Shown here piece after piece: positions 26,615 to 62,489 of a stretch of 64,000 nucleotides of DNA. The notes beneath the pieces are model-generated. The model ran no database searches and had not been told where the DNA came from. It was given only the letters and a program-made list of their open reading frames with translations. The stretch is taken from NCBI RefSeq assembly GCF_030028105.1, contig NC_092383.1, positions 87,191,921 through 87,255,920 on the forward strand, given 5' to 3'. The position numbers and the translations under genes are program-made. Numbering within the stretch: the first letter of the stretch is position 1; each line of letters opens with the position of its first letter. This DNA is from Mobula birostris (Eukaryota).

Positions 26615-27029
26615 GTAGGTTTTTCAGTGATTAACTTTGTGCCTTCTATAAAGTAAGTGTCTCTTGATCTTTGCCCAGACATTGTCCATCCTTCACTATC
26701 TCTGCATTCATACCAGTGCCAAATGTTCCCTTCTGTGTGGTAGGCCACTGAACCCAGTCACAAATTAATTATCTCCTGAAAGCCACCAAACAGATATCTC
26801 ACATTACTGTGGAATTATAAGACCAGTTTTCAACAGGAGATTTAATTTACATCTGCAAGTAAAGTAAGTGTCTCATGATCTTCGTCCCCACCCTGTCCAT
26901 CCTTCACTATTTCTGCATTTACATCAATGCCACATGCTTCCGTCACTAAATCCAGTCACAATATCATTTTCTCCAGAAAGACAGCAAACATATGACAGAT
27001 ATCTCACATTACTGTCTTTAAACAAGCAG

Positions 27030-27580
27030 GAGCAACTTTATTTGGTACCTCCCACACCTAATAAAGTGGCCACTGATTGGATGTTCCTGGTCTTCTGCTT
27101 CTGTGTCCCATCCACTTCCAGGTTCGATATGTTGTATTTTCAGATGCTCTTCAGCACACCACTGTCATAACACACGGTTATTTGAATTCCTGTCACCTTT
27201 CTGTCAGCTTGAACCAGTCAGGCCATTCTGTCATTAACAAGGCATTTTTGTTCATAGAATTGCTGCTCTCTGTATGTTTTATTTTATGTTGTTCACACCA
27301 TTCTCTGTAAACTCTCAAGACAGATGTATGTGAAAATCCCAGGAGATCAGTATGTTCTGAGATTCTCAAACTACCCCATGTGGCCCCATCAATTATTTCA
27401 TGGTCAAAGTCACTTAGATCACATTTCTTCCTCATTCTGATGTTTGGCCTGAACAACAACCAAACCTCTTGACCATGTCTGCAGGCATTTATGGACTGTG
27501 TTGCTGCCATGTGATTGACTAATTAGGTATGTGCATTAACAAGCAGCTGAACAGGTGTATCTACTAAAGTGGCAGAAGAC
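27030..27580 (-). mobile_element. Tc1-like non-autonomous element
   Basis: MRKKCDLSDFDHEII...LLGFSHTSVLRVYREWC (Tc1 paired-like HTH). Degenerate CACTTTATTAGGTACACCT-type TIRs at both ends. Confidence 0.8.
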
Positions 27581-27634
27581 TGTTGGATTTTCAGATGTTC
27601 ATTCAGTGTCTGAATGTTTAATTCTTTCCCACAG

Positions 27635-27955
27635 AACATGTTTCTGTTCCAGTGATTCAATATCAGTCACCAGCATATGTGTCACGTCTCGGGGGCTCAG
27701 TGTCAGTGTCCTGTGAGTCTTTCCAGGGATCCCTTCCCATTCAGTACCGATGGTATGAAAAATCCTCACATGGTGATCCAAAGATCTCAGATACCAATGA
27801 ACTGGCTCTACATTGTCAATCCTTCAACCAGCAGCACCATCAATATTATTGCAGTGCCTCGAATCGGCTTGGAGCAAGATCCAGTGCGATAGTTAAAGTG
27901 ACAGTCTTCAACAACGGAGAGATCTGCAGTTATGTGACAGAAATCAATGGCACCA
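27635..27955 (+). CDS. Ig C2-type exon 1 with a Cys-containing C-terminal extension
   Basis: CCCACAG acceptor, GTAAGT donor, 321 nt, phase 1-1, open. Motifs GGSVSVSCES..GSLPIQYRWY and YYCSASNRLG. Confidence 0.92.
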
Positions 27956-28129
27956 GTAAGTTCTAATTTCAAGGGAGGATACATTTAAATATTTCTTTTT
28001 GTTACTCTGTTACTGCTGCTCTTATACTTATAGTGAGGATAAGGAATTTCTTTACATTTGTAAAAGCTACACATTGCAGAGACCATGGGGTAGAAATAAA
28101 GTGTAGTGAACAGTTATGTCCGTCACTTA

Positions 28130-28512
28130 GTCATGGAGATGTGGACCACCTCTTACATAGTTGGACTTGCACATCCAGTTGAAAGCATTCCATTCATACT
28201 TCTGCCTTCTGCTTTGAAAAGGCTGGAATAGGTGTTGAGTTATGAGACAGTGATACTCATAAAAATCAAAGGAAGGACAGGCCTGCAGATAGATTGTCAC
28301 CAGGACCAGATGGACTGCACCCCACCGTTCTGAAAGACTTTGTGGAGGTATATGTGGTGAACTTTCAATAAGAATTAGACTCTGGAATTTTCCCAAGGAC
28401 TGGAAATTTGGAAGTGTCACTCCACACCTTAAGCAGGAAAGGAGGCAAAAGAAAGGAAATTATAGACCCATCAGTGGTTGGGAAGATGTTGGAGTCCATT
28501 ATTAAGAACAAG
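28130..28512 (+). mobile_element. CR1 ORF2 fragment split by an insertion (resumes at 29841)
   Basis: KQERRQKKGNYRP and GKMLESIIKN pieces; continues KVLGYLEGFDKI after 29861. Confidence 0.7.
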
Positions 28513-29840
28513 CTTTTGCTTCGCGAAAATCCATGAAAGCAGAGGGGTGGCCCAAAGAATGAGTGACTGTTAAACATTAGAACACCAAAGCCCCCCCAGC
28601 TCTCCCCTCCCATACACAAGCAGTAGCAAGGCAATGACCCCCCCCCCCCGCCTCACCACACCAGCTAAGAAAGCACCGGCACCCTCCACCGAGCACTCAA
28701 GCGTGCAGCAAAGTATCAATAAAGCCATAGACTTGCAGTACCTCAAAGACTACTCGTTCACCCAGTTATTCAATATACTACAGGGTCTCTCTCTCCCTAA
28801 TAAGAGAAAAAGAGGTGTCTCTTTTTCTCAGCGAGAGGGAGCATAAAACAAACAACTCATTGATTTATAATGTTAAATGGCTGTTGCATTGCTTTTTCCG
28901 AGCTCCATGCCCCGAGGGTTGGTCCCAGGGCTCAGGTCTCAGGACACCCAGCTGGCAGCTAACCCACTGCTCCCGATGTTCCATGTTCCATGTTCTCCAG
29001 TGACACCTCAGTCAGGGGCACCGGTCGAGAATCAGCCTGTCCCCAGAGCCACAAAAATCCGGCACCCTGAATGCACGCTTGTCTTCCAGGCCGCGTCCTT
29101 GGGGTATTAAGGCCAGTGGTGAGGCCCTGATAGCAGGTTACATTCCCGCAAATATCTGGTCAGAGTCACAGTCTTCCAAAGAACTTTGATAAAGAAAAAA
29201 AACATATATCAAAAACAGAAATAGAGCCATTCTCAAAGATGCAAGCAAAGTGGTAATGTTGCAGCTATATAGGACCCTGGTCAGACCCCACTTGGAGTAC
29301 TGTGCTCGTTTCTGGTCACCTCACTGCAGGAAGGATGTGGAAACTATAGAAAGGGTGTAGAGGAGATTTACAAGGATGTTGCCTGGATTGGGGAGCATGC
29401 CTTATGAGAATAGGTTGAGTGAACTCAGTCTTTTCTCCTTGGAGCGACGGAGGATGAGAGGTGACCTGATAGAGGTGTATAAGATGATGAGAGGCATTGA
29501 TCGTGTGGATAGCCAGAGGCTTTTGCCCAGGGCTGAAATGGCTAACACGAGAGGGCACAGTTTTAAGTTTCTTGGAAGTAGGTACAGAAGCGATGTCAGG
29601 GATAAGTCTCTTACGCAGAGAGTGGTGAGTGCGTGGAATGGGCTGCTGGCGACAGTGGTGGATAGGGTTTTTTAAGAGACTCCTGGATAGGTACATGTCA
29701 CCCGAGGTAACTTCTAAAATATGTACATGTTCAGCACCTCATTGTGGGCCAAAGGGCCTGTATTGTGCTGTACGTTTTCTATGTTTCCATGTTTCAAAGC
29801 AGTTGCCATTTTGCACCATCTTGACTTTGCTCCACCCTCC
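28513..29840 (-). mobile_element. Unclassified non-autonomous element with a 21-bp TSD, containing a CR1 insert
   Basis: GAGTCCATTATTAAGAACAAG at 28492-28512 and 29841-29861. Non-coding; CAAGATGG motif near the presumed 5' end. Confidence 0.6.
29220..29810 (+). mobile_element. CR1 3' fragment
   Basis: LVRPHLEYC and LFSLERRRMRGDLIEVYKMMRG, plus a GGGCC-AAGGGCCTG hairpin and TTCTATG-type tail. Confidence 0.9.
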
Positions 29841-29959
29841 GAGTCCATTATTAAGAACAAGGTTTTGGGGTACTTGGAGGGATTTGATAAAATATGTTTT
29901 CCATATCGGGAAATCTTGTCTGAAAAACCAACCTCAGAAAGCAAGGGTGTTCCTTTCTT

Positions 29960-30153
29960 TTATTTATTTACTGATAGAGTGCAGAGTAGGTCCTTACAGC
30001 CCTTCAAGCCACACAGGCCCAGCAACCCTCGACAAACCTGATTAACTACATCCTAATCACAGGACAATCAACAAAGACCAATTAATCTTTCCGATATGTC
30101 TGTGGACTGTGGGAGGAAACGGGACCACCCAGGGGAAACACCACGCATTCCAC
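29960..30153 (-). mobile_element. V-SINE (HE1-like) fragment
   Basis: Minus strand GGTCCCGTTTCCTCCCACAGTCCACAGAC matches the V-SINE central domain. Confidence 0.7.
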
Positions 30154-31089
30154 ATGTCCAACATGCTGATTCCGTTCATTAGAACGGAGATGAGGAGTTT
30201 ATTTAGCTAGAGGGCGTTGAATCTGTGGAATTAATTACCACAGACGGCTTTTGAGGCTGACCAATTGGGTTTATTGAAAATGGAGCATGATATTTTTGTG
30301 CTTAGTAATGGCATCAAAGATTACGGGAAGAAGTCAGGAGAATGGGATTGAGTGGGATAATAACTCAACCATGATGGAATGGTGGGACAGACTCTATGAG
30401 CAAAATGGTTTAATTCTGCTCCTGTGTCTTATGGTCCCATTGTCTTATGGTCATCACTATCTTTAGAATTTCATGAACAGTCCAAGTAAATCACTGACTA
30501 CTTAAACTGAGTTTCAGGTTGCTGATTAAAATAAAGGGAACCCATACCTTCTATTTGAGTCTATGCACAGATATGAGCAAGTCTGCCACATTTCATGGCT
30601 GTGAACAGGATAATAAGCTTTCAAAATCCATGTAAAACAGTATAGGAATGTCAGTCCTATGCGAAGGATTGGCAAGTCTTCAGCTTACTGCTCCATGAGG
30701 TTTACCTGTCTCTGTGCTGAACTGAGCTGGTGGCCTGTAATTAACGGCTCCTTAATTGTCTGCAGTGATGACTGGCTTTATGGCTGTGGACTTACATTTG
30801 TGAATTTCAGTTCTGAATTTATTTACTTACTTTTATTCTTTGCATGATTTATTTTTTTTACTACACATTGTGCATTTGACAGTGTTTTTTAATGGATTCT
30901 ATAGTTTTTTTTGTTTGGTGGCTGCTTATAAAGAGAAAATCTGAAGGCTGTATATAGTATTCATACTTGGGCATTAAATATACTTTGAATTTTGAAATTG
31001 AACTGTAATATGATTGGCTGTGATCCAATAAGCTGTCACACCAATGCAATGAAATAGAATTCTGATTTTAACCTTTCAAAAGTATGTTA

Positions 31090-31467
31090 CAGTTTAGAGA
31101 GGATGCAGCAAAGTCATAGAGATATAGGCTATGGAAACAGGTGCTTCAGCTGAAATCGTCCATGCTGACCACAGTGTCTTCCTGAGTTTCTCCCATTTCC
31201 TCACAATTGGCTGGTATCCTTCTAGAGCTTTCCTGTCCATGAACTTGTCCTAATCTGTTTGAAATATTGTTTGTGTACCCACCTCTAGCTCTTCCTCTGG
31301 CAGCCTTTTCCACGTACACACTGCACTGTTCTGTGTGGAAAACACTGCCCCTCCAAGAATCTCCCTTCTCACCTTAACCGGATGCTATCTGGTTTCCAAC
31401 TCCCCTACTCTGGGATAAAGACTGTGATTATCCACCATACCTTTGCCCCTCTTAATTTGTAAACCTC
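31090..31467 (-). mobile_element. CR1 3' fragment split by L1 (resumes at 36381-36730)
   Basis: AAACCTCT | ATAAGGTCACC joins into continuous CR1 sequence across the L1. Confidence 0.7.
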
Positions 31468-34400
31468 TTTCTTTGTTTCCTTTCCAATCTTTTTATCCAT
31501 TTCAAAATTATAAACGTAACATAGTATTGATACAAAATTATTGGGATTATATTGTTGTAATTAACATATTTAAATATAAACCCAGTTGACGCACGGGTAT
31601 TAAATCCCCCAATCATAGAAGATACATATATAATATACAAAAGAAATTTTTTAAATATAACATGAAAAAAGAAAAAATATATATATACTCCAAAAGAAAA
31701 ACTAACCAAAACAATACTAACCAACTAAACTAAAAAAAAAAGAAAAGAAAGACATGGGCTGTTATGTAACATCAAAAAAAAAAGAATCATTAGTGTTGTT
31801 GACTCCGCTCCTTTCGACATATATTAAAAAGAAATAGAATAGGTTTGGAAAAGGTCAAATTACATCATACGAAAGTATTGAATAAATGGCCTCCAAGTCT
31901 TTTCGAATTTAATAGAGGGATCACGAATAACACTTATAATTTTTTCTAAGTTTCAACAGAGCATAGTTTGAGAGAACCAATGAAATGTGATGGGAGGATT
32001 GATCTCTTTCCCATTCAGCAAATGGATCTTCTAGCCATTAATGTAAGAAATGCAATCAACCGACGAGCTGAAGAGGTTAAATGAATTGATTCTATCATTG
32101 GTAACCCAAAAATTGCAGTAATAGGGTAAGGTTGTAAATCAATATTCAGAACAGTTGAAATAATATCAAAATATTATTTTTTCAAAAAAGGACATGACCA
32201 AAACATATGAGTTAAAGAAGCTATCTCAGAGTGACGTCTATCACATACAGGATTTATATGAGAGTAATAATGAGCTAATTTATCCTTAGACATATGAGCC
32301 CTATGCACTACTTTAAACTGTATCAATGCATATTTAGCACATATAGAGGATGAGTTAACTAATTGAAGAATTTTTTTCCAATTTTTAAATTGGTAAAGTA
32401 ATCATAAGTTCCCTTTCCCAATCAGTCTTAACTTTATTAGATATGTCTGGAAGTATTTTCATTATCATCTCATAAATAGTTGCTATTACACCTTTCTGAA
32501 AAGTATTTAAATCTAATTTTTTTTCCAAAATATCCATTGAATATAAATTTGGGAAGGTAGGAAGAGCAGTATTTAAAAATTTTCTGATCTGTAAATATCT
32601 AAAAAAAATGGGATCTAGGCAAATTATATTTATTAGATAATTGTTCAAAGGACATGAAACAATTATCCAAAAATAGATCACAAAATCATACTATACCTTT
32701 AGTTTTCCAAGCCAAATAGGCTTGATCCATGATTGAGGGTTGAAAGAAGAAATTAGATATAATAGGCTTGATAGCATTGATCCAACCTATCAATGATAGA
32801 GACATTGGTGACCATTTAGTAAACAGAAGTTTAATCTGATCAACTAAAGGTGAAAAAAAAGCCTTAAACAAATCCTTATGCTTTTTTGTAGTTTTAACCC
32901 CTAAATATGTAAAAAAAAAAGTTGGTAACTAATTTAAATAGTAAACATCCATAAATGGGAACCTGAATATTTTGGAGAAATAGTTCACTCTTATTAAGGT
33001 TCAATCTGTAACCAGAAAAATTACTAAACTGAGCCAACAAGGATAAAACAGTGGGAATGGACTTCTCAGGATTAGAAATGTGTAATAACAAATCATCTGT
33101 AAATAATGATAACTTATGTACTTCATTTGCACGGGTAATAGCAAAAATGTTAGGTAAGTCTCGGATAGCAATTGCTAAGGGTTCAAGGGCAATATCAAAT
33201 AATAACGGAGTAAGAGGACATCCCTGCCTAGTACTCCGAGATAAGCGGAAAAAGGAAGATCTTTGATTGTTAGTAAAAACCGAAGCTACAGGGGTATGAT
33301 ATATCAATTTTAATCCAAGATATAAATATCGAACTAAAATTAAATTTCTCAAGCACACTAAATAAATATGGCCATTCAATTCTGTCAAAAGCTTTCTCAG
33401 TATCTAATGAAATAACACATTCTGGAGTACTAAATGCATGAGTATAAACAATACTCATTAACCTCCTAATATTAAAAGTTGAATAACGATTTTTAATAAA
33501 TCCAGTTTGGTCCACAGAGATAATTTGAGGTAATACCTTCTCCAAACTAGTTGCTAATACTTTAAAAAAATTTTAGAATCTACATTCAGGAGAGATATCG
33601 GTCTGTATGATGTACAATCAGTAGGATCTTTATTCTTTTTAAGAATTAAAGAAATAGAGCTCCATAAAATGATTGTGGTAATTTACCCAATCTAATTGCT
33701 TCTTTAAAACTCTAGACAACCAAGGAGAAAGAGTAGAAGAAAAAAACATAAAAAATTCCACTGTAAAACCATCTGGACCAGGTGCTTTGCCAGAATTCAT
33801 TCAGGAAATAACAGCTATTATTTCTTCATCCCTAATAAGAATTTCTATTGTTAAACATTCTTCGGGTGATAATTTCAGAAAATTCAATTTCTTTAAAAAG
33901 TCATGAGTGTTGGGATCATGAAGAAATTCAGAATGATATTGAAGTATAACATTTCTGAGAAGATTTGTTTACCTCATCATGATTAACTGTCAAGGTGTCA
34001 TCATGTTTGCGAATCTTGATAGTTTGATGTTTAACCGAAGCTGTTTTCAATTGATTAGCTAATAATCAATTCACGATGCTGAGAATGTTCTACGAGTCTG
34101 TGGTGGCCAGTGCTATTATGTTTGCTGTTGTGTGCTGGGGCAGCAGGCTGAGGGTAGCAGACACCAACAGAATCAACAACCTCATTCGTAAGGCCAGTGA
34201 TGTTGTAGGGATGGAACTGGACTCTCTCACGGTGGTGTCTGAAAAGAGGATGCTGTCCAAGTTGCATGCCATCTTGGACAATGTCTCCCATCCACTACAT
34301 AATGGACTGCTTGGGCACAGGAGTACATTCAGCCAGAGACTCATTCCGCCGAGATGCAACACTGAGTGTCATAGGAAGTCATTCCTGCCTGTGGCCATCA

Positions 34401-36380
34401 AACTTTACAACTCCTCCCTTGGAGGGTCAGACACCCTGAGCCAATAGGGTGGTCCTGGACTTATTTCCTGGCATAATTTACATATGATTATTTAATTATT
34501 TATGGTTTTCTATGGCTATATTTATACTCTGTTCTTGGTTGGTGCAACTGTAACGAAACCAAATTTCTCTCGGGATCAATAAAGTATGACTATGACTATG
34601 ACTATGACTAATTTACCCAATATGTCACTATGTGTATAAAGCTCACTTCCAGTTTTCATTAATTGATTTTCAATCAAGGATGTTAATAATAAGCTACGTT
34701 CCACTTGAAGTTAGACTCTCTGTTTATAAAGCTCCTTACTAGGAGCAATAGATTATTTCTTATCAATTTCTTTAATTTTATCGACTAACAGAAGTGTTTC
34801 ATTCTTAATACGTTTTTTCAAACTAACAGAATAAGAAATAATCTGCCCACGGATATATGATTTAAAAGTGTCCCATACTGTCCCGTTAGAGACTTCTTCC
34901 ATAATATTAGCTGAAAAGAAGAGATCAATCTGTTCCTTCATAAACTTAACAGAATCCGGGTCTTGAAGCAGATTAGAATTAAATCGCCATTGTCTAATAC
35001 TGGGAGAAGTATCTATTAACTTGATAGAAAGTTTCAATGGAGCATGATCAGAAATGGCAGTAATGTCATAATTACAGTCAATTACAGAAGGAATTAAACG
35101 AGAATCAATAAAAAAAGTAGTGAATTCGAGAATGAGAATGATAAAAATGTGAGAAAAATGAAGACTCTTTATCCTTAGGGTATAAAAATTCTCCAAATTT
35201 CTGAAATTCCAGAGTCAATCATAAAAGAGTTGATAAGTGTAGCTGACTTATTCGGTAAAGCCTGCCTAGATATGGATCTATCCATGAGGGGATTCAAACA
35301 GCAATTAAAATCACCACCCATTATCAACGTATACTCATTTAAATTAGGAAAAGAAGTGAATAGATGCTTTAAAATTCGGGATAAACCATGTTTGGAGCAT
35401 AAACATTGACTGTAGCAAATTTGTTATTAAAAAGTTACCCAGTAATTAACAAAAATCTACCACCTGGGTCTGAAACAATGTCTTGATGAGTAAAGGTAAT
35501 TGAGGAATCTATGAAAATTGAAACTCCTTGCACTTTGGCCTGAGAGTTCGAGTGATACGTCTAGTCCTTCGAAAACCTAAAGTAACGTTGATTATCCTCT
35601 TTCATCACATGAGTTTCTTGAGCACAAATAATATGAGCATTCAGTTTTTGGAATACTTTAAAAATCTTCTTCCATTTAATTGGATGGTTTAAACTATTTG
35701 TATTCCAAGAGAGAAAATTAATAAATCTGAGCCATAATTTAAAGTCAACCCTTTGGTATATAAAGAGTTAACCATAATGTAAACTCATGAAATCAGAAGA
35801 GGAATAAACATTCAGAGAGACTGGAAGTTGCGACACTGCAGACATCTTTGTAATTCTGAATCAGCTCAACAGAAGAGCCGAATAATAAATGCAAAAAAAC
35901 CCCACCCTCCACCCATAAAGTCCCGAAACTAAGTGAGAAAGGGCTAGAAGGAGAACTAAGAACTAATACTAAATCTACCCCCATTTCTCCAGAAGGCAAC
36001 TCCAAAGCTATATGTTACAAAGAAAACACCCCAAAATCCAAAAAGAAAAATTAAACACTGTACTATAATAATCTTCATATTGTGATTTCTAAAATGAATG
36101 AAAAAAAAGTGTCGATATAAATTATTCATCAATTACAAACATAAATAATTGAAAATGGAACTTCAAAAAGAAGACAGGAATTATAGTGAGAAGGAACATG
36201 AAAAGATGACACAGTAAAAAGAACAACAGATAATATAAAGATAGGGAAACAGACCGCCATCTTAATTATACAAAGCAAAAAAAAAAACAAGATATTGCTC
36301 CATACAATGGAAATTCACTATCAAATCGGTAGTAATAATGTCAGAAATCAACTAATTAGAAGTTAACAAAATAAGGTCAC
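31468..36380 (-). mobile_element. 5'-truncated L1 (inter-ORF region, ORF2, 3' UTR), decayed; present only in copy 1
   Basis: DQTGFIKNRYS, ISLDTEKAFDRIEW, TRQGCPLTPLLF, LSLFTDDLL, AISDHAPL. A-rich tail at 31468. Confidence 0.92.
34073..34608 (+). mobile_element. Rex1/Babar 3' fragment with a (TATGAC)n tail, nested in L1
   Basis: MLRMFYESVVASAIMFAVVCWG...HRKSFLPVAIKLYN; ends AATAAAG(TATGAC)4. Confidence 0.88.
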
Positions 36381-38045
36381 CCATCAGCTCTGTTCACTTC
36401 AGGGGAAACTGTCCCAGCCTATCGATAACCCAGACCCTACAGTTCCAGTAGTATCTTTGTGAATGTTTTCTTTATCTTCTCTAATTTAATCACACTCTTC
36501 CTCTGGAACTGTACAGGGTAGACAAGGTGAGATCTTGTCAACCTCCTTTATAGTTGTAACATGCATTCCAACTGTACTTAATGCACATTCCAAGAAGGCA
36601 AGCCGGTCATACTTCTTGTTCAACACTTTGTCCACCTGTGCTGCCACTTTCAGGGACCAATGTAGTTGCACACCTCGTTCCCTACAGTGTAAGTTGTGTC
36701 TTTGTTTAATTTCCCAAAATGCCTGAGTTCAATTCCAACACCTGTTCCAATGGCCACTTTCCCAGTTCAATTTCAAAGTAATTTTATTACCAGACTCTGT
36801 ATACCATAAACAATCGAGAGATTCATCTTTTTGTAGATACCCACAAAACAAAGTAACACAATAGAATCCACAGCAAACCACACACAACAAAGAAGGACAA
36901 ACATCTAATGTGCAAAAGAGGATGGATAGTATAAATAATAAGAACATGTAAACAATGAATACATGGAACATGAGACGCGGAGTCCCTGAAAGTGAGTCCA
37001 CAGCTGCAGAGTCCGTTCACACTGAGATGAGTGAAGCCAATCCAGGAGCCCCATAGCTGCAGATCACCATGTGCTGACAAACCCGGCGGCGTAGGCCCCT
37101 AGACTCCAGCACCTCCCACCTGATGGTAGTAGCGAGAAGAGAGGGAGACGGGTCAAATGCAGGCAGATGGAACAGGCTCAATTGGGGGTTGTTGCTGGCA
37201 CAGAGTAATGGGGCTGAACACTGGATCATTTTCCAGGTCCCTTTGTAAACTTCGACAACTCTTTCCACCGTCCACCGCACTACAGTGTCATCCACACATT
37301 ATTAATCATGTCACCTACATTATCATTACAAACTATTCATATCGATGACAAATAACCGTGGTTAATAAGTAACAGCACTGATCCCAATGGTACACCACTG
37401 ATGATAATGTCTGATGTTGTCAGAAAACCAACTCCGCACTATCACAATCTGACTGCTTCCATCATCAAAAAACTCAGTCAGTTTTAGAGAGAAGATTTCC
37501 TGTGCACAAAATCATGTTGACAATCCCAAATCAGATCTTGCCTTTTCAAATTCAGGTACATCCTGTCTCACACTGTCACCTAGAGTAAATTACCCACCAC
37601 TGATCTTGTGCTCACCTGCCTGGAATGGGACTGGATCAGTAATCTATTGACTCAGAAATGTGGAAACACACCGAGACATTAGTGGGCAGTGACAATGATG
37701 ACTCCAATCAAATAAAAATCATTACATATGAAGAGCTAGGAGCACGAGATGAGGGACGATGCTGTTGTCTTCTCAGTCCATGTGGAATTCAATTGTACCA
37801 AATAATAGTGTGGCAGATTACTTAGAGCACAGCGACAGCTATAAATAAAACAACTTTAATTTTAGTCTATTCTTTATATTGTGTGTTTTTTTTTTGTTCT
37901 CCATCAGATCCAAAGTTACAATGATTTTGTTTGCCTTCACACTTGTGCTTAGGAAATGACATTAAACAATCTTGAATCTTGGATCTGATTGTGTAAATTT
38001 GATTTTACCTGTCCATTTTCTGAAGAACTTCTCCCTCAGTTTCAG

Positions 38046-42500: not shown

Positions 42501-42551
42501 CCCCTGGGCCACTAAGAAGGGAGAGGTATCAGGAAACTTAGGAGAGACTCA

Positions 42552-48792: not shown

Positions 48793-48850
48793 AGAGTGTT
48801 TGATTTTCAGATGATCATTCAGTGTCTGATTGTTTAATACTTTCCTACAG

Positions 48851-52319: not shown

Positions 52320-52510
52320 TTATTTACTGATAGAGTGCAGAGTAGGTCCTTCCGGCCCTTCAAGCCACACAGGCCCAGCAACCCTCGACAAACTTGATTA
52401 ACTATATCCTCATCACAGGACAATCTACAAAGACCAGTTAATCTTTCCAAGTTGTCTGTGGACTGTGGGAGGAAATGGGACCACCCAGGGGAAACACCAC
52501 GCATTCCACA
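52320..52510 (-). mobile_element. V-SINE fragment, paralogue of 29960-30153
   Basis: Same V-domain motif at the same position. Confidence 0.7.
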
Positions 52511-53378
52511 TGTACAACGTACTGACTCCGTTCATTAGAATGGAGATGAGGAGGAGTTTATTTAGCCAGAGGGTGTTGAATCTGTGGAGTTAATTACCAC
52601 AGACGGCTTTTGAGGCCAACTCATTGGGTTTATTGAAAACGGAGCACGATAGTTTTGTGTTTAGTAAAGGCATCAAAGATTATGGGGAGAAATCAGGAGA
52701 ATGGGATTGAGTGGGATAATAACTCAACCTTGATGGAATGATGGGGCAGACTCTATGGCAAAGTGGCTTAATTCTGCTCCTGTGTCTTATGGTCCCATTG
52801 TCTTATGGCATCACTATCTTTAGAATTTCATGAACAGTCCAAGTGAATCATTGACTACTTAAACTGAGATTCAGGTTGCTGATTAAAATACCTCGCTCAT
52901 TTTGAGATACGGGAAGGGAACCCATACCTTCTATTTGAGTCTATGTACAGATATGAACAAGGCTGCCGCATTTCATGGCTGTGAATAGGATAATAAGCTT
53001 TCAAAATTCATGTAAAACAGTATAGGAATGTCAGTCCTATGCGAAGGATGGGCAAGTCTTCAGTTTGCTGCTCCACGAGGCTTACCTGTCTCTGTGCTGA
53101 ACTGAGCTGGTGACTTGTAATTAACGGCTCCTTAACTGGCTGCAGTGATGACTGGCTTTATGGCTGTGGACTCACATTTGTGAATTTCAGTTCCAAATTT
53201 ATTTACTTACTTCTGTTCTTTGCATGATTTATGTTTTTACTACACATTGTGTGTTTGACAGTGTTTTTGAAAGGATTCTATAGTTTTTTTTGTTTCACGG
53301 CTGCTTGTAAAGAGAAAATCTGAAGGCTGTATATAGTATTCATAATTGGGCATTAAATGTACTTTGAATTTTGAAATT

Positions 53379-54186
53379 CTAGTCTCTTTTCCATTGCTGG
53401 AGAAATGGTCCAGCATTCACTTCCATAAGTCAGGATGGAATAAATGTAGCACTGCAGTATTCTGTTTTTAGTGTACGCGCTCACCTTTCTGTCTGTTAAT
53501 ACGGTCTTCATTTTTTGGAAAGCTTCTTTCACCATTGCTATTCTGTATTTGATCTCTGTGTCGCACCTGCCATTACTTGTTATTAGGCTGCCAAGATATC
53601 TGAATTTGTTGACTTGTTTGATGTTTGTATTTCCGATCTTGATCACACATTATGGGATGTTTGTCTTTCTGGAGATGACCATGCTTTCTGTCGTCTTGGT
53701 GTTGATTGAGAGGCCTCTGCGATTACTTTCTGCTGCCACTATAGTGAGTAGTTCTTGAAGTTTTGTTTCTGAGTCAGCTATCAGTACAATGTCATCAGCA
53801 AATCTGATTGTAATATATCAGCATATATTATGTCCTCCAATTGTGAATTCTGTGATGTTTCTGATACTTCTCAAGATATTTTCACTATACAGGTTGAGTA
53901 AGTCTGGCAAAAGGACACAACCGTGCCTGACTCCTCTCATGATATTCACATACCCACTCACTTCTCCTATTCTGATGGATGCTGTCTGGTCCCAGTATAA
54001 GTTTCTTAAGAAACGTATATCTTTCCCGTCTATGTCAAGGTCTTGAAGCATTTCCAGAAGATCTTGCTGTCTGATAGCGTCAAAAGCTTTTGTATAGTCG
54101 ATGATACTTAGGGAGATGTCTTTCTGTACCTGGATGGCTCGTTCACATATCATCCGTAGAATGAAAATTGCATTTCTGGTTCCAGT
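53379..54186 (-). mobile_element. RTE-clade LINE internal fragment; present only in copy 2
   Basis: TRNAIFILRMICER, IDYTKAFD, GVRHGCVL, FRYLGSLITSNG, YGSECWT. Truncated at both ends. Confidence 0.88.
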
Positions 54187-55275
54187 GTTTTCTGTACCTT
54201 CTCTAACTTAATCACGCACTTCCTCTGGAACTGCACAGGGTAGACAAGGTGAGACCTTGTCAACATCTTTTATAGTTGTAACATGCCATTCCAACTGTAC
54301 TTAATATCACCATCCAAAGAAGGCAAACCGGTCATACTCCTTGTTCAACACTTTGTCCACCTGTGTTGCCACTTTCAGGGAACAATGTAGTTGCACACCT
54401 CATTCCCTACAGTGTGAGTTGTGTCCTTGTTTAATTTCTCAGAATGCCTGAGTTCAATTCCATCACTTGTTCCATTGGCCACTTTCCTAGTTCAAAATTC
54501 AAAGTAATTTTATTACCAAACTATGTATACTATAAACAATCGAGAGATTCGTCTTTTTGCAGATACCCACAAAACAAAGTCACACAATAGAATCCACAAC
54601 AAACCACACACTACAAAGACTGACAAACATCTAATGTGCAAAAGAACATGAATGGTGCAAATAATAAGAACATGTAAACAATGAATACATGGAGCATGAG
54701 ACGCGGAGTCCCTGAAAGTGAGTCCGCAGCTGCAGAGTCCGTTCACACTGAGATGAGTGAAGCCAATTCAGGAGCCCGATAGCTGCAGATCACCATGTGC
54801 TGACAAACCTGGTGGCGTGGGCCCCTAGACTCCAGCACCTCCCACCTGATGGTCATAGCGAGAAGAGAGGGAGACGGGTCAAATGCAGGCAGATGGAACA
54901 GGCTCAACTGGGGGTCGTTGCTGGCACAGAGTAATGGGGCTGAACACTGGATCATTTTCCAGGTCCCTTTGTAAACTTCGACAACTCTTTCCACCGTCCA
55001 CCGCACTACAGTGTCATCCACGCATTATTAATCATGTCACCTACAATATTATTACAAACTATTCATATCAATGACAAATAACCATGGTTAATAAATAACA
55101 GCACTGATCCCAGTGTCACACCACTGATGATAAAGTCTGACGTTGTCAGAAAACCCACTCCTCACTATCACAATCTGACTGCTTCCATCATCAAAAAACT
55201 CAGTCATATTGTTAGAGAGAAGATTTCCCATGCAAAAAATAATGTTGACTATCCCAAATCAGATCTTGCCTTTTC

Positions 55276-58200
55276 TTTTTTAATTTTTTATTTTTATTGA
55301 AGGAATGACACAATACAGAATATATAATGAATTACATTTTGCTCCATTTTGCTTTAATATCGTACCCCCAAAACAAACCTGCCCCCACCCGCCCTCCCCG
55401 AACATATCACGGCAACTAATATATTTACAACACAACAATTCGCAAATACAAGTACGGACATTTCACAACCATACCCCCACAGTACTTCAAGACAACGGCT
55501 CACACACATCTGCAACATGTCAGATGATCCAAAATACACTCATATTTACAATTCATCAACCACCCTGTGAGGTAAATTATAAGCGTGTTAAATGGGAGGC
55601 AACTTCCCAAGTACAATCAAATGCCCTCAACTGGTAGGTAATTCCTTAAGACTCCCAAAATATGATAAGAAAGGTCCCCATTTCGAATAGAACTTTTTCA
55701 CAGACCCCCTCAAAGTGAATTTAATCTTTTCTAATTTCAGAAAAAACATTACATCTTCTAACCAAGCAGCAGCAGTTGGGGGAGTGGCAGATTTCCAAAC
55801 CAGCAAAATTCTCCTACGGGCCAATAGCGATGTAAATGCAATGATATCCGACTGGCTTGCATTTAAACCCAAATCATCATCTGCCACACCAAATACAGCT
55901 ATAAGCGGGCAAGGTCTCAGTGTCACCCCCAAAACCTCACTGATAATTTTAAAAACCAGTGCCCAATAGTCATCAAGCCGAGGGCATGACCAAAATGCAT
56001 GTACTAAACCAGCCGGAGAGAAGGAACACCTGTCACAGCCAGCGTCTGTCCCAGGGTGTATGTCTGCAAGTCTGGCTTTACTTAAATGTACCCTGTGTAA
56101 AACTTCAAATTGTATGAGCCCCAGTCTAGCACATGATGATGAGAAATGAACCCTATTCAATACTTTTGCCCAATATTCCTCCGCCAGATCCATACCGAGG
56201 TCATCCTCCCACCTACTCTTAGTTTGGTTTAGATCTTGAACTCCCAAAGACATCAGCTGAGAGTATAGTTCAGAGATCAGCCCTTTATTGTTGAAGCTAA
56301 GAGTGAGTTTTTCCCATAACATAGCAGGTGGTAGATCAGGAAAAGAGGGAAATTTTTCCTTGACAAAGTGGCGAATCTGCAGGTATTTAAAAATATGATT
56401 ATGCGGAAGGCCATACTTACCGCGCAGGTTATCAAAACTGTCAAATATGTTATCAGTATACAAATCCTTAATGCGCATAAGACCATTCAAACCCCATTGT
56501 CTGAAAGCTGAATCGAATGTGGAGGGAAGAAATAAATGGTTTTTATGAATGGGGCCCAAAACTGAAGCTGATATGAACTTACAGTGGCAGCGAAATTGAT
56601 TAAAAATTTTGAGGATGGAGAGCACGACCAGATTAGATGTGAATTGAGAGGATTTCAGTGGTAAGGAAGAATACACCAAAGCTGGGAGAGACGAGGAGTG
56701 GCAAGACCGTGACTCAAGCAGGCACCAGATTATATCTGGTCGGTGGAGCCAAAATAATACTTTTTGAATGTTCGATGCCCTGTAATAATGAATACAGCTG
56801 GGAAGACCCATTCCACCTACGTCATGACCTCTTTGGAGAGTGTGCTTATTAACCTTTGGGACCTTATTTTCCCAAATAAAGGAGGTTATAGCTTGGTCGA
56901 CTGATTTAAAAAATAACTTAGGTAAGAAAACTGGCAAACACTGAAACAAATAAAGAAATCTAGGAAGTATAGTCATTTTCACTGACTGAATTCTCCCAGC
57001 TATAGTAAGGGGTAAACTGTGCCATCTCTCGGGGGTAAACTGTGCCATCTCTCGAAATCAGCCTTCATTTGGCTAACCTGAGGCCTGTAGTTAGAACATA
57101 GGACATAGAATAGTACAGCACAGTACAGGCCCTTCAGCCCACAATGTTGTGCCGACTCTCAAACCCTGCCTCCCATATAAGCCCCCACCTTAAATTTCTC
57201 CATATACCTGTCTAGCAGTCTCTTAAACTTCACTAGTTAGCTTCAATCAGAGATGTAAAAGAGTGAGTAATATGTATTCCTAGGTATACAAAACCATCTT
57301 GAGATAAAGGAAAAGGCAAAGATTCCTGTCGGATCTGTAGGGCCAAGTTATTAATGGGAAAGCATTTGCTTTTTTGAAAGTTCAGTTTATAGCCAGAGAA
57401 AGCTCCAAATTGACCTAATAATAACACAATAGCAGGACTACCACCTACAGGGTCGCTAACATAAAGTAAGAGGTCATCAGCATATAGGGGTACATGGTGT
57501 TCCATGTCTGCTTTTCTAACACCTTGAAATAATATAGTTGACTTAAGTGCAATAGAAAGAAGCTCAATTGCAATTGCAAAAAGAAGAGGGGACAGTGGGC
57601 AGCCTTGGCGAGTGCCACGTGTTAATGGGAAATAGTCAGATCGAAAATAATTTCTCTGTATACATGCTAAAGGCGAGTGATATAATAGCTTAACCCAAGC
57701 TATAAATATGCTACCAAATCCAAACTTCTCCAAAACATTAAACAAGTATACCCACTTCAATCTATCAAACGCCTTCTCCGCGTCCAAGGAGATAACAACC
57801 TCTGGACTTGGAGAATCACTGGGTGAATAAACCACATCAGCCAGTGGACGGATATTAAAAAAAGAATAGCAATTTTTAATAAGACCTGTTTGATCGTCTG
57901 AAATTATCTTGGGAAGGGGACGTTCTAAACGGCATGCAAGCACTTTAGCCAAAATTTTCACATCTACATTCAAAAGTGAGATGGGGTGATATGATCCACA
58001 TTGAGTCGGGTCCTTGTCCTTTTTAAGAAGTAGTGAAATAGCTGCCTGTGAAAGAGCAGGGGGTAAGGAGCCATTCTCCAAAGATTCCTGAAACACTTCT
58101 AGAAGGACCGGTATGAGCTTATCCTTAAATTTCTTATAAAATTTTATTGGATAACCATCAGGACCTGGGGACTTACCACTCTGCATAGCCATAATGGCAT

Positions 58201-59567
58201 TATTAATCTCTTCCTGCCCAAGAGCCCGATCTAGGTTCTCCACCTCCTCTGGTTCAAGAGTTGGTACTTCCAAATTATCTAAAAGACGCTCCATATTTGT
58301 TTTATCTGAGGGGAACTCTGAGGCATACAGAGAGGAATAAAAAGTTGCAAAGATGTTATTAATCTCTTTTGGATTGCTTGTCAAGTTTTGGTGCATGTCT
58401 CTTATCTGGGGAATAAGTCGTGATGCAGCTTGACATTTCAACTGATGAGCCATAAACCGGCTCGCCTTGTCACCATATTCATAATCAAGGCCACGTGTCT
58501 TAAGAATTAATTGTTCTGATAGGTTTGTGGATAGAAGATTAAACTTCACTTGCAAATCAACCAGGCTTTTATATAATTCCGCAGTGGGTGCCTCAGAGGA
58601 TTTTCTATCCAGGTCCAAAATAGATTGCAATAACAATTGCATTTCCTTCCTACACTCTTTATTGGCATGTGAAGTATAAGATATTATTTGACTCCTCAAG
58701 TAAGCTTTTAAAGTTTCCCAAAGTAAAGAGTATGATACCGACTCAGTTTTGTTAGTCTCGAAGAATGTGTCAATGTTAGCCGATGTATAACTACAAAATT
58801 TCTCATTAGAAAGCAAAGGAGGGTTAAGTCTCCACAGAGGCCATTTTCTAACGGTTAATGGAAAACATAGGTCCAGTTTCATGGGCGAGTGATCAGATAT
58901 AAGTACAGCAGTGTATTCAATTTGTCTAATCATTGGTATCAAGGAGTTATCTGTAAAGAAATAGTCTAGCCTGGAATAGGAATGGTGAACATGATAAAAG
59001 AAAGAGAATTGCCTAACTGATGGATTCAAAAATCTCCGAGGATCCATATAACCATTTTGTTGCATAAACATCGAGAAGGCCTTTGCCATACCAGAAAATG
59101 TTCCCCTAGGGCAAGACCTATCAAGCAGTGGGTCAATAGCACAGTTCAAATCTCTGGAAAAGATTAGCTTATGTGTATTCAGGTTAGGTATTAATGACAA
59201 AACCTTATTTGCAAATTGGACATCGTCCCAATAAGGAGCATAAACATTTACCAAAATAACAGGTATCTGAAACAGAGAGCCAGAGACTATAATAAAAGCG
59301 ACCATTAGGGTCACTGATTACATCAGATGGTGTGAACTGCATTCTATTGGTGATTAATATTGCCACTCCCCTAGACCTACTATTAAATCTGGAATGAAAA
59401 ACCTGACTAATCCAAGCTTTACGAAGTCTATTATGGTCCTCCACTCTTAAATGTGTCTCTTGTAGAAATAGTATATCTGCTTTCAATTGTTTCAGATAAG
59501 AGAAAACTTTTGCTCTTTTAACCGGACCATTCAGCCCCTTTACATTCCAAGAAATAAACCTCACTAA
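55276..59567 (-). mobile_element. L1 ORF2 and 3' UTR, 5'-truncated at the ORF2 start, relatively intact; present only in copy 2
   Basis: RFISWNVKGLNG, QETHL, GTRQGCPLSP, LYADDLL, CSFSPAGLVHAFWSC; poly-T at 55276. A 23-bp tandem duplication at 57009-57054 shifts the frame. Confidence 0.95.
57095..57233 (-). mobile_element. Short CR1 3' end with a 7-bp TSD, inside L1
   Basis: TAGTTAG at 57088-57094 and 57234-57240; CR1 terminal hairpin and tail. Confidence 0.8.
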
Positions 59568-60167
59568 CACAATCTGACTGCTTCCATCATCAAAAAACTC
59601 AGTTGTATTTTTAGAGAGAAGATTTCCTATGCACAAAATCATGTTGATGATCCCAAATCAGATCTTGCCTTTTCAAATTCAGGTAGATCCTGTCTCACAC
59701 AATCACCTCCAGTAAGTTACCCACCACTGATCTTATCCTCACCTGCCTGGAATGGGACTGGATCAGTAATCTATTGACTCAGAAATATGGAAACACACCC
59801 AGACAGTAGTGGGCAGTGACAATGATGACTCCAATCAAATAAAAATCATTACTTGTGAAAAGCTGGGAGCATGAGATGAGGGACGATGCTGTTGTCTTCT
59901 CAGTCAGTGTGGAATTCAATTACACCAACTGACAGTGTGGCAGATTCCTTAGAACACAGTGACAGCTTTAAATGAAACATCTTGAATTTTAATCTATTCT
60001 TCATATTGTGTTTTTTTGTTCTCCATCAGATCCAAAGTAACAATGATTTTGTTCTCCTTTACACTTGTGTACAGGAACTGACATGAAACAATCTTGAAAC
60101 TTGAATCTGCTTGTGTAAATTTGATTTTACCTGTCCATTTTCTGAAGAACGTCTCCCTCAGTTTCAG

Positions 60168-60482
60168 GTGCTTTATGGGCAGAAGATAAAGTAAGAGGAG
60201 TTGTGGGAAGAGCGGTCACAATCGATTGTCACTATGCCCCAATGTACCGTTCACACACAAAGTATTTGTGCCGCATATGGGATCACCAATGCACATCGTT
60301 AGTGAATACAAGTGGACAAAGTGAGCAGTATGGAAGAACGACAATCAGAGATAACACATCCCTGGGAATATTTACTGTTACTATGGAGAATCTTGTCTCT
60401 CGAGATAGAGGACTTTACAGATGCGGAATTACAACATCTGGCAATCATCCAGCCTTTGACATTTATGTAGTAGTTTCTGATG
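60168..60482 (+). CDS. Ig V-type exon 3 (duplicate of exon V2)
   Basis: TTTCAG acceptor, GTAGGT donor, 315 nt, open; 15 differences from V2. Confidence 0.92.
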
Positions 60483-62489
60483 GTAGGTTTCTCGTATATA
60501 GATTTGATGTCACCACTGAAATGTCTGATTCCTGTTTTCCCTCGTCGGAGTTCGAGCAGCACGGATATCCTGAGGCTCCGCAGTGGTGCAGAGTCCTGTG
60601 GGTTCTGGTCAAGGAACGAGGAAACCCCTCTCAGGATGCTCTCATTGAGTGCAGAGTCTGACCCACTGATGGGACACCGATTTCCAATGGGAGGCTCATC
60701 GCATTTTCCTGCCTCTGAACTGTATGAAATGTCACCCTGTCAGAGGTTTGAATTCAGACCAAACTTAATAACCTGATATTAACAGGTCGATGAGAAACAA
60801 GTGTTTCTCATGGTGTAAATACCTTGAAATTCATAAAAAGGGAATCAGTTCCAGAGCTAAACAGACTTCATTCAATTCTCCCACAGCAGGCTTTCCCACT
60901 ACCCATCCCTGCTTCATGGACCAGTCACTCCCCCCTCTACCACATGCTGACTCTCTTTGTCTCTGTTAATGTGCTCCAGGAATCCACTCCCCAGAACCCA
61001 CTGACCATCTACTTCCCAGCAGCCAGCCTCTACACCCAGCCCATTCCTGGTGAGAAATAGAGCAATGGAATTAGAGAGAACATGGGACACAATCCCTGCA
61101 GTCACCACCCTCAGTGTAAAAAAAAACGTGTCACAAATGTCCTTTAAAATTTCCCCTGATCACCTTAAGACTTTGCTCACTATTATTTGATATTTCAACC
61201 CTGGGAAAAAGAGATTCTGACTATCTTCCCTATCTCTGACTTCTATAAATTTACAAACTTCTATCAGGTCTCCCGTCAGCCTCCTATGCTCGAGTGAAAA
61301 CAAACCAAGTTTTTCCAACTCTGTCCATGGCTAATACACTCCAATCCAGGTAACTATGTATTGATTGATTGACTGATTGATTGAGATATAGCGTGGATTA
61401 TGCCCTTCAAGCATTGCCGCCCAGCAATGCCCAGATTTAGCCCTAGCCTAATCATGAGACAATTTACAGTGATAAATTAACATACCAACTGGTAGGTCTT
61501 TGGACTGTGCAACGAAACTGGAAATTAAATTCCAGGTGAAGTCAATCTTCCCTAATGTATGAGGAGTATTTGAAGGCACTGGGCCTGTACTCGTTGGTGT
61601 TTAGAAGAATGAGGAGGATCTCATGGAAAGCTATCGAGCATTGAAAAGCCCAGTGGATGTGAAGAGGAGGTTTCCTACAGTGCGAGCATCGAGGACTAAA
61701 GAGGGCACAGTCATAGAATAAAAGTATGTCCTTGAAAAGAGAGATGAGGGGAGGATTTCTTTAGCCAAAAGCTGGTGAATCTGTGGAATGCATTGCCACA
61801 AGTATCTGTGGAGACCAAATCATTGGGTATATTTAAAGCAGAGGGTGATTCTTAAGGGCTTCAAAAGTTACAAAGAGAAGGTATGAGAATAGATGAAGAA
61901 GGATGATAAATCAGCCATGATTGAATGGTGGAACAGACTCAATGGACAGAATGGCCTAATTCTGCTCCTATATCTTATGGTCTTATGGCCTATGGTCTTT
62001 CTACTTCTCCAGTCACATATGATTCCTTTTTGGATTCATATCGATACTGATACTCATGGGTTCCCTTGCTGCTATAGGTCACTGAAACCAATCACAATTA
62101 TACTCTGTCCCAAAAGTCACCATTCATCTTGTACATATCTGACAATTTCCCGTTTTCACATGATGGGGGAAGTTTTCCAGGACACATACAAATGTTGCCA
62201 TTCCAAAGTCAACCTGTTAGGTGCCACTGAACACTGCCTCCTTGCTGCTGAGAGAGATTGTAACTCTGATTTTCACACTGACACATACTCAGTGTCATCA
62301 CTGCTGTCCTGATCTGGAGTCCTGTGATAATGTCAGACATGGCAGTTCAGGCGGATGGGGGGGACGCAGGGACACAGGGAGGTAGATGAGCTGCCGAGAT
62401 TTCAAACTGGTGGGTCCTGGTTGAGATACAGAACTGCGGAAATCAACAGTGTGTTTGATTTTCAGATGTTCACTGATTCTTTTCCACAG

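Follow-up and report, generated by a model that had tools for sequence, protein, structure and literature searches.

The question raised by this locus is how an immune receptor gene came to encode six immunoglobulin (Ig) domains. The sequence analysed was a window of 64,000 nucleotides from Mobula birostris (NC_092383.1, positions 87,191,921 to 87,255,920), and all positions given here are those of the window. The first-pass annotation had proposed that an ancestral V-C2-V-C2 gene was enlarged in frame by one tandem duplication of a C2-intron-V unit. Exon duplication in genes of the Ig superfamily (IgSF) is textbook knowledge, and the MDIR family of receptors is named for its modular domain content.

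Structure and identity of the receptor gene

The window probably holds the 5' two thirds of an MDIR-family gene on the + strand, in the order leader, V1, C2-1, V2, C2-2, V3 and C2-3. A candidate leader (signal peptide) exon was located by sequence scan at 24882-24921 (MLWTLLVLIGFLP plus 1 base, phase 1 donor T/gtgatt); it resembles the leaders of the relatives P0007 (MMWTLILLIGFLP) and P0008 (MWLSIILFGFLP), and joins V1 in frame. The Ig exons, all on the + strand, are V1 (26294-26614), C2-1 (27635-27955), V2 (38040-38360), C2-2 (48851-49171), V3 (60162-60482) and C2-3 (62490-62807). Exon length is 321 nt throughout, apart from C2-3 with 318 nt. All six are intact, with AG/GT sites and phase 1-1, and the conceptual splice of the leader and the six exons gave 654 codons without a stop. 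V1, which lies outside the duplication, and C2-3, of the membrane-proximal C2c type, are present in single copy. The frame continues from C2-3 in phase 1 toward stalk, TM and tail exons past the window end; a scan up to base 64000 found no TM or tail exons in the window, and the orthologue of Mobula hypostoma would place the stalk, TM and ITIM-bearing tail exons beyond it. No second MDIR gene was found in the window.

V1 matched Pfam V-set at 4e-12, with pIgR and CD300/CLM-1 as its best PDB matches. For the V exons, the best PDB matches were pIgR (2e-48, several stretches), CLM-1/CD300f (2e-19), NKp44 and TREM2; Pfam V-set was matched, and the extra Cys pair of the pIgR type (WC...C) was seen in all three. 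The C2 exons, of the FCRL5 type, matched FCRL5 at 1e-36. No protein in the databases was encoded by this stretch, the nearest being 98% identical on one domain. The conceptual protein matched the skate proteins MDIR5 (P0202; 59% over 439 aa, E=2e-180), MDIR3 (P0176; E=1e-171) and MDIR2 (P0232; E=5e-93), these MDIR names being taken from UniRef. Judged by this homology, by its CD300/pIgR/TREM-like V domains and by its modular Ig domain number, the gene belongs to the MDIR family; its V domains, of the pIgR/CD300 type, alternate with C2 domains of the FCRL type. The MDIRs of the clearnose skate (Cannon et al. 2006, Immunogenetics 58:362, cited in PMC3031540) form a multigene family that has both activating and inhibitory members (PMC3031540). 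Both they and the window gene combine V and C2 domains in variable number, the skate MDIRs retrieved being VC, VCVC and VVCVC, and the window gene VCVCVC.

The relatives of the gene are labelled "polymeric immunoglobulin receptor-like" in RefSeq. Mammalian pIgR, CD300 and CLM resemble the window V exons, and FCRL5 the C2 exons, but the domains of pIgR are all V-type, those of FCRL all C2/I-type, and CD300 has a single V, whereas the window gene shows strict V/C2 alternation. A true pIgR has an ectodomain of 2-5 pIgR-type V domains and nothing else, and binds J-chain-containing Ig; in the window gene a C2 domain of the FCRL type follows each V domain. The RefSeq name reflects no more than similarity in the V domains.

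Two collinear copies and their breakpoints

Self-BLASTN resolved two adjacent copies on the + strand: copy A at 26745-47949 (the 3' part of intron i1, C2-1, intron i2, V2 and the 5' part of intron i3) and copy B at 47950-62134. The copied block, 14-21 kb in size, holds one C2 exon and one V exon. Seven collinear + strand blocks were aligned at 82-93% identity: 26745-28175 with 47950-49392, 28390-28560 with 49410-49591, 28559-30999 with 50913-53378, 36464-37547 with 54186-55275, 37434-38972 with 59559-61095, 39113-39626 with 61216-61730, and 47542-47949 with 61726-62134. Homology began and ended exactly where the first-pass annotation had put the limits of its C2-intron-V unit, and both ends were confirmed to the base. 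The left flank of copy A reads gtgtggtagg/CCACTGAACC at 26744/26745, the junction between the copies CATCTTGTAC/CCACTGAACC at 47949/47950, and the right flank of copy B CATCTTGTAC/atatctgaca at 62134/62135. The junction is therefore chimaeric: to its left stands the sequence that closes copy B, to its right the sequence that opens copy A. The absence of microhomology claimed for it also held, with 0 bp at the joint as the sequence stands and mismatched bases on either side.

Aligned similarity covered approximately 7.4 kb of intron and exon, including old repeats common to both copies (30187-30452 with 52543-52794, and 47557-47797 with 61741-61982). Non-coding identity was about 91%, with a K2P divergence of 0.092 over 6.8 kb. 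The exon relationships were as first described: V2 and V3 shared 90% amino acid identity and were each 58-60% identical to V1, and C2-1 and C2-2 shared 84%, against 53% to C2-3. No indel was found in 645 nt of duplicated exon, against 3.0 expected (P=0.05), and no stop was present; dN/dS between the copies was 0.42 for C2 and 0.81 for V. A tandem exon-block duplication leaves neighbouring collinear copies that meet at a chimaeric junction, with symmetric phases and intact splice sites, and all of these are present. The growth of V-C2-V-C2 to V-C2-V-C2-V-C2 in frame, and the new Vb-C2a neighbour pair that it created, are supported.

Insertions private to one copy

The only breaks in collinearity were transposon insertions that one copy has and the other lacks. 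Copy A alone carries a Ty3/Gypsy-type LTR retrotransposon on the + strand (39627-47541; PNMA-like gag, RT and RNase H), with a target-site duplication of about 5 bp and LTR pieces approximately 90% identical; copy B shows the empty site at 61726-61730. Copy B alone carries, on the - strand, a LINE-type reverse-transcriptase fragment (49592-50912; empty site 28559/28560 in copy A) and a LINE with an endonuclease plus RT ORF and a T-rich tail at its left end (55276-59558). The latter is flanked by a 116-nt target-site duplication (55160-55275, repeated at 59559-59674), the single-copy site being at 37434-37547 in copy A. Each of the three private transposons is therefore matched by a clean empty site in the copy that lacks it. 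An inverted match between 34073-34605 and 50118-49590 was considered as a break in collinearity and rejected, as it represents two independent insertions of one RT-bearing LINE-type family.

The presence of old repeats in both copies, together with private transposons that have empty sites, indicates a segmental copy at the DNA level, as opposed to an artefact of assembly or haplotype. A falsely duplicated haplotype, or a collapsed or expanded repeat, is extremely improbable: nothing was found in its favour, the copies are about 9% apart and differ by three large transposons with target-site duplications, and the same six domains are encoded in the independent assembly of M. hypostoma.

Introns between V and C2 and the proposed exchange

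The two V-to-C2 introns, i1 and i3, are the only paralogous introns of the gene, and both breakpoints fall in them. Their paralogy dates from a much older V-C2 doubling. A conserved block at 26725-26788 in i1 matches 62060-62122 in i3 (z=11.4) over 63 nt at roughly 73% identity, and its 18-nt core occurred six times, always in V-to-C2 introns, against 0.07 expected. The block was accordingly rejected as a dispersed transposon. In i1 it is carried by a local tandem repeat of approximately 206-245 nt (26621-27015, + strand; z=21.7), where it straddles the left breakpoint 26744/26745; this repeat also contains relics of the 3' end of a V exon (26790-26864, DISHYCGIIRPVFNRRFNLHLQV), with a second start at 26995-27015. 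In i3 the region 62060-62144 (+ strand) comprises the block followed by the right breakpoint 62134/62135. The junction region (47875-47992, + strand) has an i3-derived block copy at 47875-47936, the breakpoint 47949/47950 and an i1-derived block copy at 47950-47992.

An ancestral gene V1-i1-C2a-i2-Vb-i3-C2c would explain these observations by a single unequal exchange, in which i3 of one chromatid or homologue, at 62134, was joined to i1 of the other, at 26745. The joint would have been blunt, about 50 nt from the homologous position and inside the block present in every V-to-C2 intron, and the product would carry C2a-i2-Vb twice. The receptor would thereby gain a second C2a, a second Vb and a Vb-C2a junction that was previously absent. 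The frame would be preserved through the symmetric phase 1 of all Ig exons, the reason already offered by the first-pass annotation, which fits with the six phase 1-1 exons and the open spliced frame. That annotation had also called the duplication "out-of-register". The unit is indeed C2+V, but the term misleads, since the breakpoints lie in paralogous V-to-C2 introns, some 50 nt from homologous positions. As these introns are the sole paralogous pair in a gene of two V-C2 units, unequal exchange can only copy C2+V, and the register is the one to be expected.

In strict NAHR the breakpoints lie in homologous sequence; here the joint was blunt, with homeology nearby and no crossover within identity. 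The breakpoints, about 50 nt off homologous positions, fall within the 63-nt homeologous block, and the chance of their lying so close is around 6%. This is suggestive of homology-guided pairing.

Comparable gains of domains are known in other IgSF receptors. In KIR/LILR-type clusters, non-allelic intron exchange between genes with phase-1 Ig exons yields hybrid genes and altered domain number. Most such exchanges take place within extended regions of high similarity, whereas the joint in the window is a blunt one, with a shared block of only about 63 nt that is roughly 73% identical. The V-C-V-C form 4Ig-B7-H3 (CD276) arose from 2Ig-B7-H3 by exon duplication (PMC3172298). As in the window gene, two Ig domains were added by tandem duplication of a V+C exon pair, and only in some lineages; however, 4Ig-B7-H3 is of the B7 family, went from 2 to 4 domains and has nearly identical copies, and no relation is claimed.

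Orthologue, age and mosaic divergence

An orthologue from another species is the M. hypostoma protein P0152 (948 aa, RefSeq "polymeric immunoglobulin receptor-like"). The window protein was 93% identical and collinear with it over 644 residues, the six domains corresponding one-to-one. P0152 has a stalk, an uncharged TM segment and a tail with three ITIM-like motifs (VVYTDL, IVYVDV and VTYADI), and its residues 795-948 had no match in the window. MDIRs are type I membrane receptors that carry either an ITIM tail or a charged TM residue. The six-domain form may be expressed and may signal as an inhibitory receptor. The first 152 residues of P0152 map to window transposon ORFs (18362-18639 and 23234-23428) and not to the leader at 24882; this transposon-derived N-terminus means that the RefSeq model may rest on weak transcript support.

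The non-coding divergence of about 9% and the six domains held one-to-one with M. hypostoma point to an old duplication. Present-day copy-number polymorphism is therefore unlikely.

Divergence between the copies was mosaic. In non-coding DNA it reached 14.2% at 27195-28860, a stretch around the C2 exon, and was 7.5% over the remainder (chi-square 53, with boundaries chosen after seeing the data). Such a pattern is not predicted by one clean event with clock-like decay. Later conversion or local acceleration has therefore overprinted the record. A long recent conversion tract was rejected, as sliding identity varied between 83% and 98% and no extended stretch came close to identity. In the C2 tree, C2-1 lay on a long stem, apart from C2-2.

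Trees of the repeated units and the proposed single-step origin

In the tree of C2a+Vb units, window unit A grouped with unit A of M. hypostoma (support 100/99) and window unit B with unit B (97/92), and the single-unit M. birostris gene P0154 was sister to both window units (100/99). This tree bears on a fusion of two tandem four-domain MDIR genes, in which i3 of the upstream gene recombined with i1 of the downstream gene. The intervening C2c, TM and tail exons, leader and V1 would be deleted, giving the same end product and dot plot as an intragenic duplication, and the divergence of about 9% would then date the gene duplication and not the fusion. Many matches per contig per species suggest dense tandem MDIR clusters on a single chromosome in Mobula, Hypanus and Hemitrygon; P0154 splits almost at the node of units A and B (internode 0.006), and the mosaic divergence shows two halves without a simple shared history, all of which would suit a fusion. 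It requires two events where one suffices, however, tblastn found no second leader/V1 or C2c/TM remnant between the copies, and units A and B are mutually closest after their orthologues. A fusion is thus considered unlikely.

Among the relatives in nine batoid species the domain layouts were VC, VCVC, VCVCVC, (VC)4-5, VVC and VVCVC. Stingrays commonly have four-domain relatives with V1, C2a, Vb and C2c types, Hemitrygon P0008 among them; like the sister position of P0154, these support growth from a V-C2-V-C2 gene. The pattern V1-[C2a-Vb]x2-C2c was also found in Hypanus P0155, Rhinoraja P0004 and Leucoraja P0164. Hemitrygon P0167/P0242 and Pristis P0165 were not counted as the same register, as their repeated units differ. 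The unit tree clusters by lineage, and AU tests rejected shared positional clades (p=0.0002 and 0.0008, for groups named after the tree was seen). From these trees the pattern appears to have arisen separately in Hypanus, Rhinoraja and Leucoraja.

The occurrence of one domain pattern in Mobula, Hypanus, Rhinoraja and Leucoraja might instead reflect an ancient six-domain gene of rays and skates, its inner units homogenised in each lineage by repeated gene conversion. Protein trees do not distinguish conversion from independent duplication, and mosaic identity along the copies fits conversion patches. Nevertheless, the similarity of about 7.4 kb stops sharply at two points, and a chimaeric i3/i1 intron lies between the copies; tracts of conversion normally fall far short of this length and leave no such junction, and the six-domain genes have four-domain genes nested among them in every lineage. 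This history is very unlikely. An intragenic tandem duplication of C2a-i2-Vb by one unequal exchange is probably the best explanation, the exchange and its single step being what the breakpoints would imply. The duplication itself has exact breakpoints, intact exons, an open frame and later private insertions, and is shared with M. hypostoma.

Significance for the MDIR family

The duplication is genuine and its record clean, but it is an old one, found also in a sister species and typical of the MDIR family. No new question is opened by it, as RefSeq already models the six-domain orthologue. The window duplication provides a base-resolved example of domain gain in an immune receptor with phase-1 Ig exons. 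What is added to the first account is that the V-to-C2 introns, as the sole paralogous introns, explain both the "odd" C2+V register and its recurrence, the same V-[C2-V]x2-C2 pattern being found separately in at least four batoid lineages. A tentative and rather unlikely extension is that the conserved V-to-C2 intron block is a recurrent site of pairing and breakage, at which C2-V cassettes were repeatedly gained and lost in a fixed register across rays and skates. If so, reciprocal two-domain V1-C2c genes and alternatively spliced four- and six-domain isoforms would be expected as by-products, and domain number could still be polymorphic within populations.

Domain architecture and relatives of the gene

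Six immunoglobulin (Ig) exons were identified on the + strand: V1 (26294-26614), C2-1 (27635-27955), V2 (38040-38360), C2-2 (48851-49171) and V3 (60162-60482), each of 321 nt, and C2-3 (62490-62807), of 318 nt. All six are preceded by a pyrimidine tract and AG acceptor, are followed by a GT donor, and are phase 1 at both ends. A candidate leader exon, also of phase 1 (24882-24921; MLWTLLVLIGFLP), is similar to the leaders of relatives. Splicing it to the six exons gives 654 codons with zero stops, ending in phase 1, so that the frame is preserved as the first-pass annotation had stated. V2 ends in …GAAGTTTCTGACG and C2-2 starts with AACCTGTG…. No further Ig exon was found anywhere in 1-26000, and no transmembrane exon in the final 1.2 kb of the window. 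The first 4 kb (1-4000) is GC-rich (53%) and carries another Gypsy-type RT/RNase H ORF at 474-1629.

The V exons match Pfam V-set, with pIgR and CD300/CLM-1 as the best solved relatives, and the C2 exons match Ig_3/Ig_2, with FCRL5 as the best solved relative. Amino-acid identities agreed with the earlier claim that V2 resembles V3 and not V1 (V2/V3 90%, V1/V2 60%), and that C2-1 resembles C2-2 and not C2-3 (84% and 53%, respectively).

A full HMMER search with V2 plus two word-indexed searches returned a large batoid and shark family, mostly named 'polymeric immunoglobulin receptor-like' or 'Fc receptor-like protein 5' in RefSeq. It contains MDIRs 2, 3 and 5 of the clearnose skate (Modular domain immune-type receptors by their UniRef names), and the window protein is 59% identical to MDIR5 over 439 residues (E=2e-180). 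The MDIRs are multigene activating/inhibitory receptors with CD300/TREM/pIgR-like domains (PMC3031540). The closest protein is the Mobula hypostoma orthologue P0152, with 93% identity over 644 residues and collinearity across all six exons. Its tail, comprising an uncharged TM segment and three ITIM-like motifs (VVYTDL, IVYVDV, VTYADI), has no match within the window; the gene is thus probably an inhibitory receptor with 3' exons past base 64000. Residues 1-152 of P0152 map to transposon ORFs of the window (18362-18639 and 23234-23428). As a canonical leader is present at 24882-24921, the 5' end of the public P0152 model is probably a modelling error.

Breakpoints of the duplication

Self-BLASTN of the window, the sequence of which has no N and no masking, linked 26745-47949 (copy A, 21.2 kb, with C2-1 and V2) to 47950-62134 (copy B, 14.2 kb, with C2-2 and V3) by seven collinear + strand blocks of 82-93% identity. 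The three breakpoint contexts were aligned, giving ...gtgtggtagg|CCACTGAACC for the left flank (26744|26745), CATCTTGTAC|CCACTGAACC for the junction (47949|47950) and CATCTTGTAC|atatctgaca for the right flank (62134|62135). Sequence to the left of the junction matches the end of copy B and sequence to its right matches the start of copy A, a pattern diagnostic of head-to-tail duplication. The tandem duplication with base-level breakpoints that the first-pass annotation had proposed was therefore confirmed, and the collinear copies bore out C2+intron+V as the repeated unit. The absence of microhomology at 47949/47950 also held, as the bases adjoining the breakpoints differ in the present sequence, although, given about 9% divergence after the event, a match of 1-2 bp might have been lost.

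An ancient six-domain layout homogenised by conversion would also make the units alike, but at this locus the similarity extends through entire introns and breaks off sharply at both ends, with a chimaeric intron in between, and concerted evolution is an unlikely origin for it.

Register and intron homology

The ancestral gene was named V1-i1-C2a-i2-Vb-i3-C2c, where i1 to i3 are introns and the other letters are domain types. Intron i1 contains the left breakpoint, 130 nt 3' of V1, and i3 the right one, 355 nt 5' of C2-3. These are the only paralogous introns in such a gene, both being derived from the V->C2 intron of an older V-C2 doubling. The duplication had been described as out of register; the C2+V unit is real but is not odd, since exchange between the paralogous introns i1 and i3 must yield C2+intron+V.

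Local alignment revealed a homeologous block between i1 (26725-26788) and i3 (62060-62122), with z=11.4 against shuffles, which spans the left breakpoint and stops 12 nt short of the right one. Six copies of its 18-nt core were counted in the window (0.07 expected), all of them on the + strand and within V->C2 introns. A dispersed repeat was considered for this block and rejected on account of that confinement. The breakpoints are about 50 nt apart in i1 coordinates, and the block is consequently present twice at the junction (47875-47936 and 47950-47992). A random i3 breakpoint would fall this near the homologous position with a chance of about 6%, and this closeness is only suggestive of homology-guided exchange. 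Because the joint itself is blunt, it was not made by crossing over inside identical sequence. The route that would fit best is one in which the homeologous units paired and end joining or a template switch came next.

Intron i1 also harbours a small tandem repeat (26621-26807 versus 26827-27012, z=21.7). The repeat, of about 206-245 nt, lies in 26621-27015, and this stretch has a copy at 47950-48220. The repeat includes a relic of a V exon 3' end at 26790-26864, covering the final ~75 nt (DISHYCGIIRPVFNRRFNLHLQV), which a strong GTAAGT follows, and a second relic starts at 26995-27015. This stretch of i1 has been rearranged before; an earlier partial duplication adjoining the breakpoint seems to have left its trace here.

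An i1 x i3 exchange would be expected to leave, as its reciprocal (deletion) product, a V1-C2c two-domain architecture. Two-domain genes pairing a V1-type V with a C2c-type C2 were observed in Hypanus (P0204) and Hemitrygon (P0227 and P0210).

Transposons, age and constraint

The two copies differ in length because transposons entered single copies after the duplication. A Ty3/Gypsy-type element with PNMA-like gag, RT and RNase H occupies 39627-47541 of copy A, with a target duplication of ~5 bp, and its empty site is intact in copy B at 61726-61730. Its LTR pieces are ~90% identical to each other by self-BLASTN, placing its insertion soon after the duplication. The 5' LTR (39750-40980) is apparently interrupted by a nested insertion with a minus-strand RT fragment (ORF 40003-40605) of the same repeat family as 34076-34447 and 49744-50577. 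Copy B carries a LINE (55276-59558) and an RT fragment (49592-50912), both with empty sites in copy A. The target-site duplication of the LINE (55160-55275 and 59559-59674) is unusually long at 116 nt; its duplicates are ~92% identical to one another and to the single site of copy A (37434-37547). LINE debris at 31000-36463 in copy A and 53379-54185 in copy B is unrelated between the copies. Older repeats are common to both (30187-30452 with 52543-52794; 47557-47797 with 61741-61982), showing that introns laden with transposons were copied as DNA. Together with ~9% divergence, the shared repeats and the private transposons with empty sites in the other copy exclude, for practical purposes, an assembly or haplotype artefact.

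The non-coding K2P distance between the copies was 0.092 (6.8 kb compared). At a rate of 0.5-2 x 10^-9 substitutions per site per year, which was assumed and not measured, the duplication is roughly 20-90 million years old. No indel was found in the duplicated exons, where the intron rate predicts 3.0 (P=0.05), and none of the 46 substitutions makes a stop. The dN/dS was 0.42 for C2-1/C2-2 and 0.81 for V2/V3, and the FG (CDR3-like) loop holds 4 of the 11 V2/V3 differences. From these sequence comparisons, both unit copies look to be maintained.

Non-coding divergence was uneven, reaching 14.2% at 27195-28860 around the C2 exon (about 48400-51210 in copy B) versus 7.5% elsewhere (chi-square 53, with boundaries set post hoc). 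In the C2 tree the stem leading to C2-1 is long, and every outgroup paralogue is nearer to C2-2. Of the two, C2-1 is more derived, yet conservation with respect to M. hypostoma is 98% for C2-1 and only 90% for C2-2. This mosaic could reflect either locally accelerated change in copy A or conversion with an unsampled paralogue as donor.

Timing and recurrence

When C2a and Vb were concatenated as units and their tree was built by a careful search over 213 columns, unit A of the window grouped with unit A of M. hypostoma (100/99) and unit B likewise with its M. hypostoma counterpart (97/92), so the duplication is older than the split of these two species. The path separating units A and B (0.16) was roughly double that between orthologues (0.06-0.09). 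Sister to all four Mobula units (100/99), with a very short internode, was the single unit of the M. birostris gene P0154. This nearly simultaneous split, and the dense clustering of the receptor family, would suit a fusion in which i3 of a four-domain gene crossed over with i1 of a downstream twin, deleting the DNA between and leaving an identical end structure. Such a fusion requires two events, and a relic of a second V1 or C2c between the copies was not found; it is an unlikely origin compared with a single tandem duplication.

The same pattern, with V2 like V3, C1 like C2, and V1 and C3 distinct, is present in several other proteins: Hypanus sabinus P0155 (V2/V3 89%, C1/C2 87%) and P0156 (78%, 84%), Rhinoraja longicauda P0004 (86%, 92%) and Leucoraja erinacea P0164 (94%, 78%). 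In the unit tree the two units of P0155, P0004 and P0164 group within species, beside four-domain genes, while those of P0156 were unplaced. Grouping by position was rejected by AU tests for Mobula/Hypanus (p=0.0002) and the two skates (p=0.0008), the groups being named post hoc. Either separate events struck the same register on several occasions or the units stay similar through conversion; the protein data fit both. Other expansions repeat different units (Hemitrygon P0167/P0242, Pristis P0165).

The L. erinacea gene models comprise a six-domain isoform X1 (P0164, 803 aa) and a four-domain X2 (P0196, 593 aa), which differ by exactly one C2+V unit. One gene may produce both forms by skipping a duplicated phase-1 cassette; by analogy, the window gene might yield six- and four-domain isoforms.

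The first-pass interpretation of the duplication is supported, but refined in three respects: the register was to be expected, the event is old and shared with a sister species, and the same pattern recurs within the family. The duplication is a well-documented new case of a known type of event in a known receptor family.
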